This document shows, in pieces, positions 2,413-25,801 of a DNA stretch of 25,801 nucleotides. A model generated the notes under the pieces. That model was not told the DNA's origin, made no database searches, and was given only the letters and a program-made list of their open reading frames with translations. Within the stretch, counting starts at the first letter, position 1. Each line of letters opens with the position of its first letter. This DNA is from Chlorokybus atmophyticus (taxonomy: Eukaryota > Plantae > Mesostigma and Chlorokybus algae): positions 1 to 25,801 of the forward strand of contig RHPI01001968.1 of the NCBI GenBank assembly GCA_009103225.1. The letters run 5' to 3'. The position numbers and the translations under genes are program-made.

Positions 2413-3532
2413 CTGTGTGCGTGCATACGCGTGCGCGTGCGTGTCCGTTAAAACCTATGAGTGCACATGCATGTGTGCGCATGTGTTGTATTTTTCTGAA
2501 ACAACAATGAACACACAAGTAGCAAAGACTCACGCACCACTGCACACTTGCCTGTTCGTGTGCAGGCTGCTCAAGTGCATAGTCGTTGGAAACTGCACAG
2601 CTGTCATAGAAAGCGCCTGCTGCACAAGTTGTTGAGTGTTCCAGTGCAATCATTGAACGCAGCAACATGCAGCGGTTGCATACCTTCTGCGCTTGCGCGG
2701 AGCGGCTTCGGCGCCCGCTCTTTGAGTTGTTTGCAAGATGCGCAAGCGGCTCACTTGCATAGCTCTCTGTGCGGATTTTCGCACAATGCCTGCACCGCAA
2801 AGGCTACTTTTGTATGTCAACGTGCGCGTGTCTGTGCATGTGCATATAGTCTACCATTTAGCCTTTGAGAGTAGTGCTTCAATTTTGTAAGTGACAAGCT
2901 AGCGCTGACATGAGGAGGCACGTACCCGTTGTTCTGATGGGCGCGAGACCACCTTGACTGTCTGGCAAGCATATTGGTAGTGCACGCCGGTAGGTGAACT
3001 TCTGCCCATGACACGACTCAAACTTAGTTAAAGCTAAGCGCTTGTGCGGCTGCGCACACAGGCGTACACCAATGTACACACTCACATGTACACTAACGCC
3101 TGCAACCCATGCACCCAAGCACGCGCTCACGCGATAATGCACACAGCCTGCACTGGAGCCCGCACATGCACACAAGTCTTGGACAATGCTGCTGGCACTT
3201 ACTGCATAGTGTTGCAGAAGTTGCCATCACCATGTCGACTGTTGAGCGGCGCCAGCTAGCTCTGATAGACACGGTGTGGATGTCAGCCTGCGGCTACACA
3301 TGCGAGTGAAAACGTTGCCATGAATGCACGTGGGAGAGACGTCCAGCAAAGCTCTTGTTGACAAGGGGCAGTCATCATCAAGCAGCATGCCCACCACACC
3401 TGGCTCAACGGGCTCTGACCGGGCGACCACCGTAGGGGCGTCCACACCAGTGCCCAGCCACCGGCAGCAGCAGCTCCGCCTCCGTTTCAGGAAGACGCCA
3501 AGCTTAGCTGGAGCCCACCACCACGCCCCACC

Positions 3533-3591
3533 ACACCGCCACCGCCACCGCCACCGCCACCAGGCCAGCAGGCGCTCAGCTCAGCTCAGCT
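3533..3591. repeat. (CCACCG)n and (AGCTC)n simple repeats abutting the assembly gap
   Basis: Seen directly. Confidence 0.8.
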
Positions 3592-4494
3592 NNNNNNNNN
3601 NNNNNNNNNNNNNNNNNNNNNNNNNNNNNNNNNNNNNNNNNNNNNNNNNNNNNNNNNNNNNNNNNNNNNNNNNNNNNNNNNNNNNNNNNNNNNNNNNNNN
3701 NNNNNNNNNNNNNNNNNNNNNNNNNNNNNNNNNNNNNNNNNNNNNNNNNNNNNNNNNNNNNNNNNNNNNNNNNNNNNNNNNNNNNNNNNNNNNNNNNNNN
3801 NNNNNNNNNNNNNNNNNNNNNNNNNNNNNNNNNNNNNNNNNNNNNNNNNNNNNNNNNNNNNNNNNNNNNNNNNNNNNNNNNNNNNNNNNNNNNNNNNNNN
3901 NNNNNNNNNNNNNNNNNNNNNNNNNNNNNNNNNNNNNNNNNNNNNNNNNNNNNNNNNNNNNNNNNNNNNNNNNNNNNNNNNNNNNNNNNNNNNNNNNNNN
4001 NNNNNNNNNNNNNNNNNNNNNNNNNNNNNNNNNNNNNNNNNNNNNNNNNNNNNNNNNNNNNNNNNNNNNNNNNNNNNNNNNNNNNNNNNNNNNNNNNNNN
4101 NNNNNNNNNNNNNNNNNNNNNNNNNNNNNNNNNNNNNNNNNNNNNNNNNNNNNNNNNNNNNNNNNNNNNNNNNNNNNNNNNNNNNNNNNNNNNNNNNNNN
4201 NNNNNNNNNNNNNNNNNNNNNNNNNNNNNNNNNNNNNNNNNNNNNNNNNNNNNNNNNNNNNNNNNNNNNNNNNNNNNNNNNNNNNNNNNNNNNNNNNNNN
4301 NNNNNNNNNNNNNNNNNNNNNNNNNNNNNNNNNNNNNNNNNNNNNNNNNNNNNNNNNNNNNNNNNNNNNNNNNNNNNNNNNNNNNNNNNNNNNNNNNNNN
4401 NNNNNNNNNNNNNNNNNNNNNNNNNNNNNNNNNNNNNNNNNNNNNNNNNNNNNNNNNNNNNNNNNNNNNNNNNNNNNNNNNNNNNNNNNNNNNN
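3592..4494. other. Assembly gap (N run, 903 nt)
   Basis: N characters. Confidence 1.

Positions 4495-5111: not shown

Positions 5112-5189
<78 letters not shown>
5112..5189. repeat. (CT)n microsatellite
   Basis: Seen directly. Confidence 0.98.
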
Positions 5190-5194
<5 letters not shown>

Positions 5195-7853: not shown

Positions 7854-10207
7854 ACCTGAAGACGTCGAGAAGACGGCTTTCAACACTCGGTACGGCCACT
7901 ACGAGTGGTGGTGACGTCCTTTGGCATGACAAACGCTCCGGCAACCTTTCAAACTTTGATGAATGAGGTCTTTGCTGATCTGATTGGCAAGGGTGTGCTA
8001 GTGTACCTCGACGACATCCTTGTGTACACGAAGAGCAAGAGGGAGCACGTGGTGTTGCTGCGCAAGGTGATGCAGCGTTTACGTCTACACAAGTTGTTTG
8101 CTCAGCTCAACAAGTGCTGCTTCTTGCTTGAGGAGGTAGAGTACCTTGGCCACATTGTATCCAAGCAAGGAATTAAGGCGGACCCGAACAAGATTGCCGC
8201 GATGCGCAATTGGGCTACTCCGAAGGACGTGAAGGGGGTCATGTCGTTCCTAGGGCTTGCCGGCTACTATCGCAAGTTTGTGAAGGGCTTCTCGCACTTG
8301 GCGGCATCGTTGACGGCGTTGCTAAGAAAGGGGGTGGCTTGGAGCTGGTCGGAGGCTGCAACAAAGGCATTTTCTGACTTGAAAGCGGCCCTAACAACGG
8401 CTCCCGTGCTGCAACATCCCAACATGCAATTGCCCTTCGTGGTGGCGTGCGATGCGTCCGACAAGGCCATTGGGGCAGTTTTGCAGCAAGATCACGGCAA
8501 CGGCTTGCAACCGGTGGCCTATTTCAGCAAGAAGATGAGCGGATCTGAGCTCAATCACCCCGTTCATGAGAAGGAATTGTTAGCGCAGATACTAGCGCTA
8601 CGGCAATGGCGTTGTTTCCTTGAAGGCAAGCGCTTCAAACTTGAAACGGACCACTCGCCATTGAGGTACCTTCAAACCTAGCCTCATCTCTCGCGTCGGC
8701 AAGCTCGTTGGCTTGAGTTCTTCCAACTCCTTGACTTTGAAGTGAAGTACAAGCCCGGCTCTTCAAACAAGGTGGCGGACGCGTTGAGTCGCCAACTCAA
8801 TGCGCTCGAAACGGTGGTGCAAGTGCAGCCTGCGTGGTTGGATCAGATCCGAGCCTTGTTGCACGAGGACGCGGTAGGTGACAAGACTATCAAGGCGCTG
8901 GAGAATGGGTCTAAGCATAGTGGCCTCTGGGCATTGAAGGAGGGGCTGCTATGGCATGGCGATCGCATGTACATAACCAACATTGCGCATATGCGCGTAG
9001 CATTGATGCGAGAAGCGCATGACGTGCCAATGGCTGGTCATCAAGGGCTGGAACGGACGTTGGCCTTGTTGAAACAGAGAGTTTTCTGGTCGAAAATGCA
9101 TCGTGATGTTAAAGACTATGTGGCATTGTGCGGCACTTGTCAAAGGGTGAAGGCGAGCAATTAACGCACCAGTGGGCTGCTCCAACCATTGCCAATACCT
9201 TTGACGAAGTGGGAGCAAGTTACTCTCGACTTCATTACGGGGCTGCCACGTACACGCGAAGGGCATGATGCTATCTTAGTGTTTGTGGACAAGACCAGCA
9301 AAATGGTGCGATTGGCGCCATGTACGGAGACTTGCACGGCTCCTGAGGCTGCCAAGTTGTTCATCAAGCATGTGGTGCGGTCTCATGGCCTTCCAAGGAA
9401 CATTGTAAGTGACAGAGACCCGCGGTTTACTGGCAACTTTTGGAGAGCTCTCCACTCAGCTTTAGGCACGAGCTTGAAGTTCAGCACCGCGTACCACCCC
9501 GAAACGGACGGCCAAACTGAGCGCGCCAACCGCGTGATTGAGGACATGTTACGGCGCTATGTGAACATCCGTCAAGACAATTGGGGAGACATGCTGGAGC
9601 TGACCGAGTTCACCAACAACCACAAAAGTGCAAGCACGAGCGTGACACCTTTCCTCATGAACTACGGGCAACAACCTTTGACGCCATTGACGGCGTGGGA
9701 ACCTAGCATGCAAAGCTCCAACGTGGAGGCCGTGGATGGCTTTCTTGTGAGGTGTGCAGACATTACCAAGGCAGCTCGTGAGGCTCTAATTATGGCACAA
9801 AACAGGCAAAAGCAATACGCCGATGCACATCGCAAGCATGTTATCTTTTCGGAGGGTGATCGTGTGATGCTCTCTACGAAGCATGTGCAGCTGGTCACAG
9901 GTGTGCGCAAGCTGAGTGAGCGATGTTTGGGGCCTTTCAATGTAATCAAGGTCATCTCAGAGGTAGCGTACAAGCTGGAGGTGCCCGATACCATGCACGT
10001 GCACCCCGTTTTTTATGTCTCGCTCCTTAAAGCTTACAAGGGGGAGACGCCACCTCGCCCGCCTCCGGTTTTTGTTCGTGAGGGCCAAGCTGAGTGGGAG
10101 GTGTGCGCAAGTATTTGGTAAAGTGGCGCGGCTATCCATGCACGAGGCTACGTACGAACCCGAGGAGAGTTTCACCAACGCCGAACAGATTTTGCAGGAG
10201 TACAAGG
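7852..10207 (+). mobile_element. pol: 5'-truncated Ty3/gypsy chromovirus pol (RT, RNase H, integrase, chromodomain), inactivated
   Basis: RT motifs PEDVEKTAF, FGMTNAPATFQ and YLDDILVY. RNase H motifs DASDKAIGAVL and TDHSPL. Integrase HHCC (AHDVPMAGH..CGTC) and D,D35E (LDFITG, SDRD, QTERANR). The chromodomain is split over three frames (EWEV / RKYLVKWRGYP / HEATYEPEESFTNAEQILQEY). Lesions: frameshift ~7908, TAG 8679-8681, TAA 9162-9164, indels ~10103 and ~10136. gag and protease are absent. Confidence 0.97.
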
Positions 10208-13927: not shown

Positions 13928-14107
13928 NNNNNNNNNNNNNNNNNNNNNNNNNNNNNNNNNNNNNNNNNNNNNNNNNNNNNNNNNNNNNNNNNNNNNNNNN
14001 NNNNNNNNNNNNNNNNNNNNNNNNNNNNNNNNNNNNNNNNNNNNNNNNNNNNNNNNNNNNNNNNNNNNNNNNNNNNNNNNNNNNNNNNNNNNNNNNNNNN
14101 NNNNNNN
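13928..14107. other. Assembly gap (N run, 180 nt)
   Basis: N characters. Confidence 1.
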
Positions 14108-22781: not shown

Positions 22782-25700
22782 TCATGCTTCATCGTCACAA
22801 AGAGCCTCGAGCTTCGCCAGCGAACTGAGGTATCTGTCCGCCATTCTACTCTGCGAGGGACACTCAGGTAGGCCTAATTCATCAAGGATACCACTCTCCC
22901 TTACGAGCCTGCATGCTTCGGGGACAACCGCCATGTGTGCCAGTGCACCCACTGCAGATAAGGTATTGCAGCCATTTGCAACAGCGGCGGCACAGCTCCA
23001 GCCTGGACCAACTCCTCCGCCATTGCGCGATTGGTAACTAGAGCGGATTCGTGCCCTTTGCATGCCAGGCTTACGAGAAGCATGCAACAGAACAACCTGC
23101 GAGTTTGGGGCTTCACCGAGCTCGAGCCATTTGCAGCAGGTTGCAGCAGCCTGACAACACCAGGTATGGCGCCAGCTTGCACAATCACACCCTGCGGGCC
23201 ACAACTTGCCATGAACTCGGCATGCAGGTGCTGCTGTATTGAGTGATAGCCATGCGCCATGAGCTTTCTTACCTTCATGATCTGGTCGTCATTTCTAGCC
23301 AACAGATGCAACAGCCTTGCACAGGCCTCTTGGCAGGGCGCACTGGTAGACGTCATCATCTGCACCACGAGCGGAATAGCACCCGCATTTGCTACCAATC
23401 TCTGCAACAACGCCAGTCATGACCGTGTCGCCTGCCACTAAGCACAGAACATATGCCCCTCACAACCATACATGTTTGCACGGAGACAAAGGTCATGTAC
23501 ACCACGAGAGTCACAAGTGACGCAAGGCATACCTTGTGTTTAGCCATGTTGAGTACAACCACCAATGCGCTATGCCTTGAGTCCTCATGGTTGCTTTTGA
23601 GACTCTCAACCATAATCTGGATAAGCTCGGCCCACCTCTTGTTCTGCGCCAACTGGAACGCCTGCGGCACAACCTTATAGGACACCTTGTAGAACAAAAT
23701 CTTCTTGCTAAGCTAGAACGTCTTGCTCATCTGCTGGAAGCATACCTGCTGTGTAGTCCTTTCGTTAAGCAGCGGAATCAAGGACAACAGCCTATCACCT
23801 GCTTGCTCCTGCCCATCTGTTCCGAAGGCAGACAAAAGACCTTGCACGGTATGATCAGATGACGACTTCAGCTTTTCCAACAGTTTTGCCCGTTGGTCTT
23901 GTCTGGTCAGCACTCGTAGCACCACGTTGTCGACAACAAGCAATGGCACTGAGCCCCAGAAGTAAGTAAGCGGGTTTGCAACAGCCATGAGGTCCTTTCG
24001 AGCTCATCAAGAGCTGCATTGAACTCAGCAATCCTCCTGCCTGCTCTCACCCAGACGAACTTCACCACATCTTTCCCAACAGGATTTTTGAAGCAAGAAA
24101 TGAGATCGATCAAGTGTCTCGCAGCATCCAGCAACCCCTTTATGGACAGCTCAATGGCATGGATCAGACTTGTGCCTTGGCGCCCGTAAGCATTATCTTC
24201 AAGAAGACGCAGATAGTCCTTGTATACGTCCTGCCACCTCTCAACAGGTGGCAACTGAGAAGGGCGTGTGATGTGCCAGCCAAGGGTGCACAGAGCCCAA
24301 GGGAGACGATTTGCTTCTCGCAACATTTTGCGCGCGTAGATTCCATGTTCCACGTTGGGCAACAGACTAACTCACGCCAATGCTGTGGCCCACTGCATTG
24401 GCCTGAGTTAGTTGGCGTGTGTTGCATCATATGGTGCAAGGTAACCTTGGAAAGAAAGAATTACATTCACATACCAGTATGGTGGCAGCATCATTTCTGT
24501 CAACGCCAGCATTTCTGAAGTATGCTGTACTCTGTAGACAATTTAAAGGGTGAATGTTCGCGAGAGCATACGGGTCAGCAGCTTGGAAAAGCATACGTAG
24601 GGCTTGCTCGTGACATGGAAGTGGAACCGGAAAGTGCTGCGTCGGCAAGCCCCCGCACACGTTAGAGTCCCTGGAAGTCACAAGGACCTTTGAACCATTG
24701 TTGTTCTGAATGGCAAAATCGCTGACCCAGCGGCGGTGTGGCTGCTGGAAGTCGTCCAGCACAATTAGATACTTGTTGAGTGTTGTCAACCAACGCACGA
24801 TCGCAGCTTTGCGCGCCTGTGCATGTCGCATCTCTTCAGTTGACATGTTGTGGCCAAGTTGCCTCAAGAAATTCTGTTGCAGGGATTTTAATGTAGTTTG
24901 TGGCTTACGCTCCAGCCAAAAGACTCCTCCTGGGAAGTCTTTGTGTGTCTGCAGCAAGCCAGCTAAATCTGCACCGGACACTCACTGATGTCAAACGCCA
25001 GCAGTGTAGAGGATACATAGCTTACCTGAGGTATGGGGGACTGATCAAAGTGAAAGATTCGCGCGTTCTGGGCATGAAACTGCCGTGCAACATGCAATGC
25101 CAATGATGTTTTGCCATAGCCGAGAGGTCCTGACATGAGAACTATGGGAAGAGTTTCTGACTTCAACAGCAGCGCCAACTTGGTAGAACATTCTCCGGCA
25201 CGACCGACTGCTAGCCTCATCGAGGGATCAACATAAGGGTGTTCGGGACTCAACTCTTCCAGAGCCGACAGTCTCCGCGTTTCTCGCCACTCCGCAGCTT
25301 CTGTCAATAGCTGTTTGACGGCGGTCACCTTACTGTGCATGATGTCCGCTATTTCCATTGCTTGTCCTGGAAGCGCAGCTGTGGCAACAAGTGTAAACCA
25401 ATTGCAGACCTTGCTTCTGAACCACGAGAGCCAGTTGGCAGTTTGTAGTGACTGGGTTAGGTCCTGTAACCTCGGTATGACGTGGTCCTTGAAGAATTGG
25501 GTCGCGTGCTGTAGTGCTTGCTGCACTGGTTCATAACCCCGAAAGTCTTGTGCTTGGGTTCTGGCTTCGTTCAACTCTCGTGTGATGTTGTCGCACTTGG
25601 CAACAAAACGAATCAGTTCATTTCTTGCATGGCCGAGAGTCTTTGCGACTGAAAGCAAATCTCGGGCAATTGTAAAAGCGGCGTCAACTGCAACCGCCAT
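22782..25700 (-). pseudogene. NLR-like STAND ATPase: N-terminal four-helix bundle (RPW8/MLKL/CC-like), NB-ARC, winged helix, Armadillo repeats
   Basis: Exons: 25700-25026, 24948-24475, 24392-23533, 23437 (or 23401)-23273 and 23191-22782, all with phase-0 GT-AG junctions. Motifs: P-loop GPLGYGKTSLA, APAF-1-like FPGGVFW, Walker B YLIVLDD, RNBS-B GSKVLVTSR, GLPL-like RLPWAL, and ARM motifs AGAIPLVVQMM, QAGAIPGVVRLL and QAGAVPPLLQMA. Lesions: TGA 24372-24374, frameshift ~23990, TAG 23713-23715, frameshift ~22965. Confidence 0.88.
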
Positions 25701-25801
25701 AGTTATGAAAGATGTGTGCGCTTGGTAGAACCGTGCCTGCACAAGTGGTATCGTTGTGGCTGCTGGACACGCTAGGCTTTCAACATATGTTGAGCCAGTG
25801 C

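Follow-up and report, generated by a model that had tools for sequence, protein, structure and literature searches.

The minus strand of a contig from the green alga Chlorokybus atmophyticus (RHPI01001968.1, GenBank assembly GCA_009103225.1) carries, at positions 25700..22782, a real and transcribed gene of immune-receptor type. In the window, that is, the whole 25,801-nucleotide (nt) stretch analyzed, a six-frame listing of open reading frames (ORFs) and a three-frame translation reveal open segments that follow one another down this strand to position 22782; the first opens with the ATG 25700..25698, which has an A at -3 and a G at +4. They are best explained as a six-exon gene of the signal transduction ATPase with numerous domains (STAND) or nucleotide-binding leucine-rich repeat receptor (NLR) type, whose product of ~820 amino acids (aa) would begin with a helical bundle, continue with an NB-ARC domain and end in a short armadillo (ARM) solenoid. 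What was observed directly is the order of the domains, the assignment to NB-ARC and Arm, and one splice junction. Though transcribed, this particular copy is probably a pseudogene that was disabled recently, or else an allele that has been crippled. A preliminary description of the same DNA had proposed an NLR-like receptor in which ARM repeats replace the leucine-rich repeats (LRRs); the gene is indeed present at that location, but several of the properties then ascribed to it have had to be revised.

An NB-ARC ATPase followed by armadillo repeats

Exon 2 matches the Pfam NB-ARC profile (PF00931) over profile positions 45-148 with 42.6 bits (E = 5.8e-11; gathering cut-off 23.5 bits), which settles the family of the ATPase as it had been predicted, and its language-model features in the ESM-atlas fall among NB-ARC clusters (0.83-0.89). 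A profile of our own, built from eight bacterial NB-ARC proteins taken from metagenomes, aligns in order with three successive exons: with exon 1 at the P-loop (profile positions 9-55), with exon 2 over positions 54-178 (E = 2.5e-19), starting at QTHKDFPGGVFW, and weakly with exon 3 (E = 0.004), where the aligned positions, 195-334, begin at the GLPL motif and reach the winged helix (...ELERTSWLLQ). The exon 3 piece alone found no match in Pfam or in PDB sequence searches. Searches of PDB with exons 1, 2 and 3 returned only RFC/AAA P-loop matches, noise and a weak match to NRC2 (E = 0.06), the best for the NB-ARC core, over Walker B and RNBS-B. Within the exon 1 ORF, aa 180-237 are matched by the Pfam families nSTAND_NTPase5, AAA_16 and nSTAND3.

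The end of exon 1 (25026..25250, minus strand) encodes a linker and then the beginning of NB-ARC, with a GTAAGC donor after 25026. The P-loop GPLGYGKT lies at 25107..25130 (aa 191-198 of the conceptual protein, GYGKT at aa 194) and agrees with the pattern GxxxxGK[T/S]. Exon 2 encodes a Walker B motif of the form hhhhDD (LIVLDD, aa 286-291), the RNBS-B motif GSKVLVTSR (aa 310) and an RNBS-C-like segment, and exon 3 a GLPL-like RLPWAL (aa 413). The motif series had been called complete; GYGKT, LIVLDD, GSKVLVTSR and RLPWAL are all in place, but the position of the MHD motif, whose histidine contacts ADP, at the end of ARC2 coincides with a break in the reading frame and reads VVD in frame 1 and CHC in frame 2.

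The C-terminus consists of ARM repeats, tandem units of ~42 aa. Pfam Arm (PF00514) matches the ORF 22901..23410 in three tandem stretches (43.6 bits, E = 2.7e-11; cut-off 20.6 bits), the best of which covers aa 5-38 of this ORF, in exon 5, and carries RLVANAGAIPLVVQMM. The ten nearest ESM-atlas clusters of the ORF are all Arm (0.94-0.95). A further, degenerate repeat in exon 4 gives a weak match to TPR_IPO5 (E = 0.0039). Pfam thus counts three repeats, and four to five may be discerned by eye. No LRR family was matched by any ORF piece of the gene in the Pfam scan, so that ARM repeats do stand where a canonical NB-ARC-LRR protein would have LRRs.

Gene model and transcription

The features of the gene, all on the minus strand, are listed below from its 5' end.

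25251..25700, minus strand: N-terminal all-helical domain, aa 1-150, first part of exon 1
25026..25700, minus strand: exon 1, N-terminal domain, linker and P-loop
24949..25025, minus strand: intron 1, predicted from splice-site reading, 77 nt, GTAAGC..CAG, phase 0
24446..24948, minus strand: exon 2, NB-ARC core, 3' end uncertain
24367..24445, minus strand: intron 2, predicted, 79 nt, GTTACC..TAG, phase 2, uncertain since other frame-keeping pairs exist
23746..24366, minus strand: exon 3, RLPWAL (GLPL-like), ARC1/ARC2 (winged helix), then linker
23662..23745, minus strand: intron 3, predicted, 84 nt, GTATGC..CAG
23533..23661, minus strand: exon 4, first, degenerate ARM/HEAT-like repeat
23438..23532, minus strand: intron 4, 95 nt, GT..AG, spliced in a public contig
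23273..23437 (or from 23401), minus strand: exon 5, ARM repeat
23192..23272, minus strand: intron 5, predicted, 81 nt, GTAAGA..CAG, frame kept whether spliced or retained
22782..23191, minus strand: exon 6, remaining ARM repeats

Five exons had been proposed initially; we obtain six, separated by short introns of 77-131 nt, the upper value applying to intron 4 if an alternative acceptor is used. Four of the five introns open with a GTAAG or GTATG donor, the uncertain intron 2 with GTTACC. For intron 1, a 56-nt alternative (24985..24930) would also keep the frame, but the acceptor at 24949 is supported by the NB-ARC profile alignment, which resumes at 24951 with QTHKDFPGGVFW. Splicing of intron 5 restores the normal spacing of the ARM repeats.

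Only the splicing of intron 4 (23532..23438) has RNA support. A contig of the public run X3 (record 10) joins 23533 to 23437 and skips the 95 nt between them, which are bounded by CT..AC on the plus strand; its flanks measure 114 nt (23533..23646) and 117 nt (23321..23437). The gene is therefore transcribed and spliced, and the last exon before the ARM region is linked to the exon that carries the Pfam Arm match, which speaks against the ARM exons belonging to a separate transcript. With all intervening introns below 135 nt, the helical N-terminus, the NB-ARC domain and the ARM repeats fit the single transcription unit that had been suggested. Contigs from public runs cover only fragments of the locus, and introns 2 and 3 lie outside their RNA coverage.

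The N-terminal domain

All of the first ~150 residues are predicted to be helical, and we consider with moderate confidence that they likely form a four-helix bundle. An AlphaFold2 (AF2) model of aa 1-112 contains four antiparallel helices (residues 3-21, 26-51, 57-84 and 88-109; mean predicted local distance difference test, pLDDT, 68.5; predicted template modeling score 0.55). Modeling aa 1-160 adds a fifth helix (111-150) that is unreliable (pLDDT 52), and Foldseek, VIA and atlas searches with this longer model were uninformative. Searched with Foldseek, the aa 1-112 model retrieves antiparallel four-helix bundles as its best rows (template modeling score, TM, 0.59-0.69; E about 1). The domain had also been described as amphipathic: its hydrophobic periodicity does peak at 105-110 degrees, as for packed helices, but only helix 1 is individually significant. 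The four-helix fold that had been proposed thus receives weak support. Three points weigh against the overall explanation given here: any output role assigned to this domain is purely conjectural, the domain falls into no recognisable family, and its structure was computed from one sequence only.

The kinship with RPW8, MLKL and HeLo bundles put forward in the preliminary description was not supported. At E <= 10, Pfam returned for aa 1-150 only PspA_IM30 (E = 0.019) and Spectrin_Anc-1 (E = 0.062), both non-significant, and none of the RPW8 (PF05659), Rx_N, MLKL_NTD, HeLo or SesA profiles. Neither NLR coiled-coil (CC) domains nor MLKL, RPW8 or HeLo appear among the structural matches; the neighbors are generic or designed bundles, chemoreceptor sensor domains and talin rods. 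When exon 1 was compared exhaustively by phmmer with 1.84 billion protein representatives, nothing matched aa 1-147. The search returned one protein, P0001, which matches only residues 148-216, around the P-loop, with 41% identity. P0001 (1906 aa) contains at least six tandem P-loop/STAND NTPase modules, an unusual array of ATPases unless its gene model is a fusion.

These results bear on what the domain might do. From its position ahead of the NB-ARC domain, an executioner role like that of RPW8, MLKL or HeLo bundles may be envisaged. It is also quite possible, if somewhat short of probable, that the domain is a lineage-specific helical adaptor or oligomerization domain with another output or none. 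The latter explanation is favored by the profile, phmmer and structural results just given and by the mostly non-significant amphipathicity of the single helices, whereas the position and the length of the domain ahead of the NB-ARC fit CC-type NLRs. The nearest language-model neighbors are moreover N-terminal STAND domains of cell-death type from fungi, SesA (PF17107) and PigL_N (PF17111), but their scores (0.75-0.80) are sub-threshold and in a range often reached by shuffled sequences. Two further considerations count against the adaptor explanation. CC domains are notoriously divergent in sequence. Those of another alga, Chara, cause cell death in Nicotiana benthamiana (PMC11218826).

Is this copy intact?

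The preliminary description had the exons splice together and did not weigh that the copy seems broken. The segments supported by homology are joined by no uninterrupted coding sequence, and two apparent 1-nt changes of frame are needed to connect them.

The first (~23975-23950, near 23955) lies in exon 3, in the winged-helix/MHD region, where a run of four Gs occupies 23954..23957. Up to ALDELERTSWLLQTRLLTSG, exon 3 is read in frame 2 and is aligned by the NB-ARC profile. Some 25 nt later, frame 1 takes over the coding signal, in a 96-codon ORF (24003..23716) carrying LLVVDNVVLRVL. The GC contents of its three codon positions (0.62/0.36/0.54) follow the same GC1>GC3>GC2 pattern as in the secure exons, and at the end of the ORF comes a strong GTATGC donor, in phase, with the same letters as the donor confirmed by RNA. 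The change from frame 2 to frame 1 counts as damage because no intron fits if both homology-supported segments are coding. A 56-nt intron (24050..23995) around this break was rejected, because the NB-ARC profile aligns its winged helix to the segment that would be lost. Micro-introns of 34 or 40 nt were discarded at both breaks, being too short; at the first break the phase would be wrong as well.

The second apparent 1-nt change (~22985-22970, near 22976) lies inside an ARM repeat of exon 6, at a run of three Ts (22975..22977, plus strand). Past ELVQAGAVPPLLQ, frame 0 encodes 25 residues of non-ARM character and then ends at TAA 22901..22903. Frame 2 instead continues with NGCNTLSAVGALAHMAVVPEACRLVRESGILDEL, coding-like in its GC1/2/3, to TGA 22782..22784. 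This continuation alone was not recognized by Pfam; we read it as a putative third ARM helix followed by the next repeat. A gapless X3 contig (record 9, 22905..23061) spans the second break and is identical to the window; this stretch is thus not an assembly artefact, since an independent run shows the same letters. Between the two breaks lies a further lesion: use of the acceptor observed at 23438 yields ...MAKHK|WQATRS and, six codons on, an in-frame TGA (23419..23417).

The surroundings of the gene were also counted in favor of damage. Contigs of runs X1 and X2 match the upstream sequence 25717..25801 and, left of 25717, share one different sequence (...GGTGTGCGGGTTGTGGC). This divergence indicates that DNA with copies elsewhere reaches to within 17 nt of the ATG on its upstream side, and the boundary may mark where a transposon or a segmental duplication ends. 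Alongside this boundary, a degenerate Ty3/gypsy element and N gaps in the window and the absence of the gene from the published Chlorokybus list made with NLRtracker point in the same direction. A collection of 15 billion proteins, queried by word search with each of the first two exons and with the ARM ORF, yielded no protein from this gene; the length window of these searches excluded full-length relatives.

Several observations weigh against a disabled gene. That X3 is RNA is only a guess, and its strain is not quite the same one (3 differences in 231 nt). The first break is under no read, and an assembly error in its G run is possible. A memoised dynamic-programming search found many stop-free GT..AG paths from the ATG, which means that ORF length alone cannot choose the gene model. 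The TGA would be bypassed by an alternative CAG|AGA acceptor 36 nt downstream of the observed one (exon start 23401), which keeps the frame. In frame 2, AQCH lies opposite the histidine that the bacterial profile conserves.

Most of these points can be assembled into an intact, functional gene, a reading that we nevertheless regard as unlikely. Its least bad stop-free model skips the frame-1 segment with an intron of ~210 nt (206-215 nt, removing 23922..23708), uses the acceptor at 23402 and ends at TAA 22901, the contig with the TGA being an unproductive isoform targeted to nonsense-mediated decay. Such isoforms are common for NLR genes, and the gene is transcribed and spliced as an intact one would be. 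For its donor, however, this model has to take a weak site (GTGCTA or GTGCTG, at about 23922 or 23913), unlike the GTAAG/GTATG donors of the gene. Moreover, the segment that it discards is the 96-codon ORF with coding-like GC and a strong in-phase donor of its own, and it gives the protein the 25 non-ARM residues as C-terminus while a clean ARM continuation exists in the other frame.

It is less probable still that one or both breaks are homopolymer assembly errors and that the true gene is open over all ~820 aa. Both breaks do coincide with short homopolymer runs, the N gaps of the scaffold mark it as a draft assembly, and the first break lies under no contig. Runs of three or four bases are, however, short for systematic errors, the gapless agreement of X3 stands against an error at the second break, and the TGA past the observed junction is a substitution-type lesion that X3 also contains. 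Finally, although no single read or contig covers the span from NB-ARC to ARM, two adjacent genes are a very unlikely explanation given the X3 splice between exon 4 and the Arm exon, gaps of intron size only (84-131 nt) with matching phases, an ORF that continues past the winged helix directly into the linker, and the lack of room for a terminator and a promoter. We therefore retain a recently disabled or crippled copy as the probable reading of this locus.

Relationship to known receptors

The architecture had been presented as lying outside the standard plant classes, and hence as possibly undescribed. It has in fact been published: CC-NB-ARM proteins form a class of non-LRR NLRs conserved in land plants and defined in PMC10030324 and in a preprint on ferns (10.1101/2025.03.18.643875). 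With a helical or CC-like N-terminus, an NB-ARC domain and ARM repeats in one conceptual polypeptide, the locus probably belongs to this class (RLS1 type), as judged by architecture. Rice RLS1/NOE2 (LOC_Os02g10900) is a protein of 1040 aa with a CC region, an NB-ARC domain and three ARM motifs, an activated form of which triggers cell death resembling the hypersensitive response together with its partner RMC (PMC10030324). The algal gene resembles it in the order of its parts, in the plant-type Walker B and RNBS-B motifs of its NB-ARC, in its few C-terminal ARM repeats and in having no LRR, and differs from it in its shorter product (~820 vs. 1040 aa) and in being an algal and apparently broken copy. 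No similarity to plant proteins was detected with the pieces of the gene that were searched, by phmmer for exon 1 and otherwise by the word searches that excluded full-length relatives.

Related proteins have been catalogued repeatedly. Andolfo et al. (2019) recognized a separate 'NB-armadillo repeat' group and NB-ARM proteins in Selaginella (PMC7145615), and RefPlantNLR mentions a rice NB-ARC-ARM protein and ARM-type repeats in Selaginella (PMC8559963). Data Set S1 of Chia et al. (2024), obtained with NLRtracker, lists 59 (NBARC)(ARM) proteins, among them 2-3 in Marchantia, 29 in Diphasiastrum, 7 in Ceratopteris and 5 in Amborella (PMC11218826). For C. atmophyticus the same data set has 17 entries, mostly TIR-NB-ARC-TPR, and zero (NBARC)(ARM) (PMC11218826). 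According to a review, Chlorokybus possesses NLR-like receptors whose C-terminal repeats are of alternative types, along with CC/RPW8-like bundles (PMC10952240).

Other receptor families share parts of this design. Like ZAR1, NRC2 and Sr35, the gene encodes ~150 helical residues before the P-loop and a predicted four-helix N-terminal bundle; it differs from them by its ARM repeats in place of LRRs, by the lack of an Rx_N match, by a non-conserved MHD position and in that no MADA or EDVID motif was established. The placement of a helical module ahead of a STAND NTPase recalls fungal NLRs with HeLo-like, SesA or Goodbye domains and, for the bundle, MLKL and RPW8, but here the language-model scores are at the level of shuffled sequences and neither Pfam nor structural searches gave a match. 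Bacterial STAND proteins (CHAT-NB-ARC, EAD7-NB-ARC, NB-ARC-TPR) have an NB-ARC core 26-34% identical to that of the gene, including DFPGGVFWLE, which was itself one of the search patterns that picked the bacterial metagenome loci and is present in one of them (L004). They differ by other N-terminal effector domains, by TPR repeats and by being intron-less prokaryotic genes. In the metagenome scans, exon 1 found no match and exon 2 only distant bacterial NB-ARC genes. The bacterial loci (L004:4483-7338, L005:4354-7296 and L008:3561-8162) show varied defense-type architectures, in which NB-ARC is preceded by a CHAT protease, by EAD7 (effector-associated domain 7), or by HATPase_c_4, the last with a long TPR array in addition.

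A possible mode of action

The workings of NB-ARC receptors are modeled on Apaf-1, ZAR1 and NRC. By analogy, in an intact version of the protein the ARM solenoid would act both as sensor and as autoinhibitory domain, folded back on the ADP-bound NB-ARC. Binding of a ligand or of a modified host protein would release the solenoid and allow the exchange of ADP for ATP at the P-loop and Walker B (the GKT and DD of which are both present here), followed by oligomerization through the NB-ARC. The N-terminal bundles would thereby be brought together as an output module, which could either insert into membranes, as CC, RPW8, MLKL and HeLo bundles do, or recruit partners.

Other features of the window

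The scaffold is interrupted by runs of N at 3592-4494, 12755, 13928-14107 and 15648. An apparent low-GC island at 3-5 kb (3.6-4.5 kb) and the long 'ORFs' within it were dismissed as artefacts of the first gap, which is adjoined by a CCACCG hexamer array (3515-3561). A (TC)41 dinucleotide microsatellite lies at 5112-5193. The Ty3/gypsy element is represented by a degenerate-looking pol region on the plus strand (7905-10121), in split ORFs that comprise RVT_1 with RNase H, Integrase_H2C2, and rve with SH3_Tf2-1 (chromodomain-side). On the minus strand, a 307-aa ORF (1489-2412) has a sub-threshold match to DUF7168 (23.0 bits vs. a cut-off of 25.5). Scans with NCBIfam and Rfam found nothing relevant.

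Concluding remarks

Taken alone, the copy described here is probably a decaying gene of known design, with an N-terminus so far tied to no executioner family. It adds to the Chlorokybus repertoire an architecture that is missing from its NLRtracker catalog. A bolder proposal, which we think rather unlikely, is that four-helix-bundle-NB-ARC-ARM receptors form an algal lineage orthologous to the RLS1 clade of land plants and that this locus is a remnant of it; paralogues still intact elsewhere in this genome would use the ARM solenoid as sensor and the bundle for a cell-death type of output. Were this true, this class of non-LRR NLRs would be placed in one of the earliest-diverging algae and with it at the streptophyte base. 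Should an intact relative exist and its NB-ARC domain group with the RLS1 type, the CC-NB-ARM branch would predate land plants, and could be studied in a simple alga.

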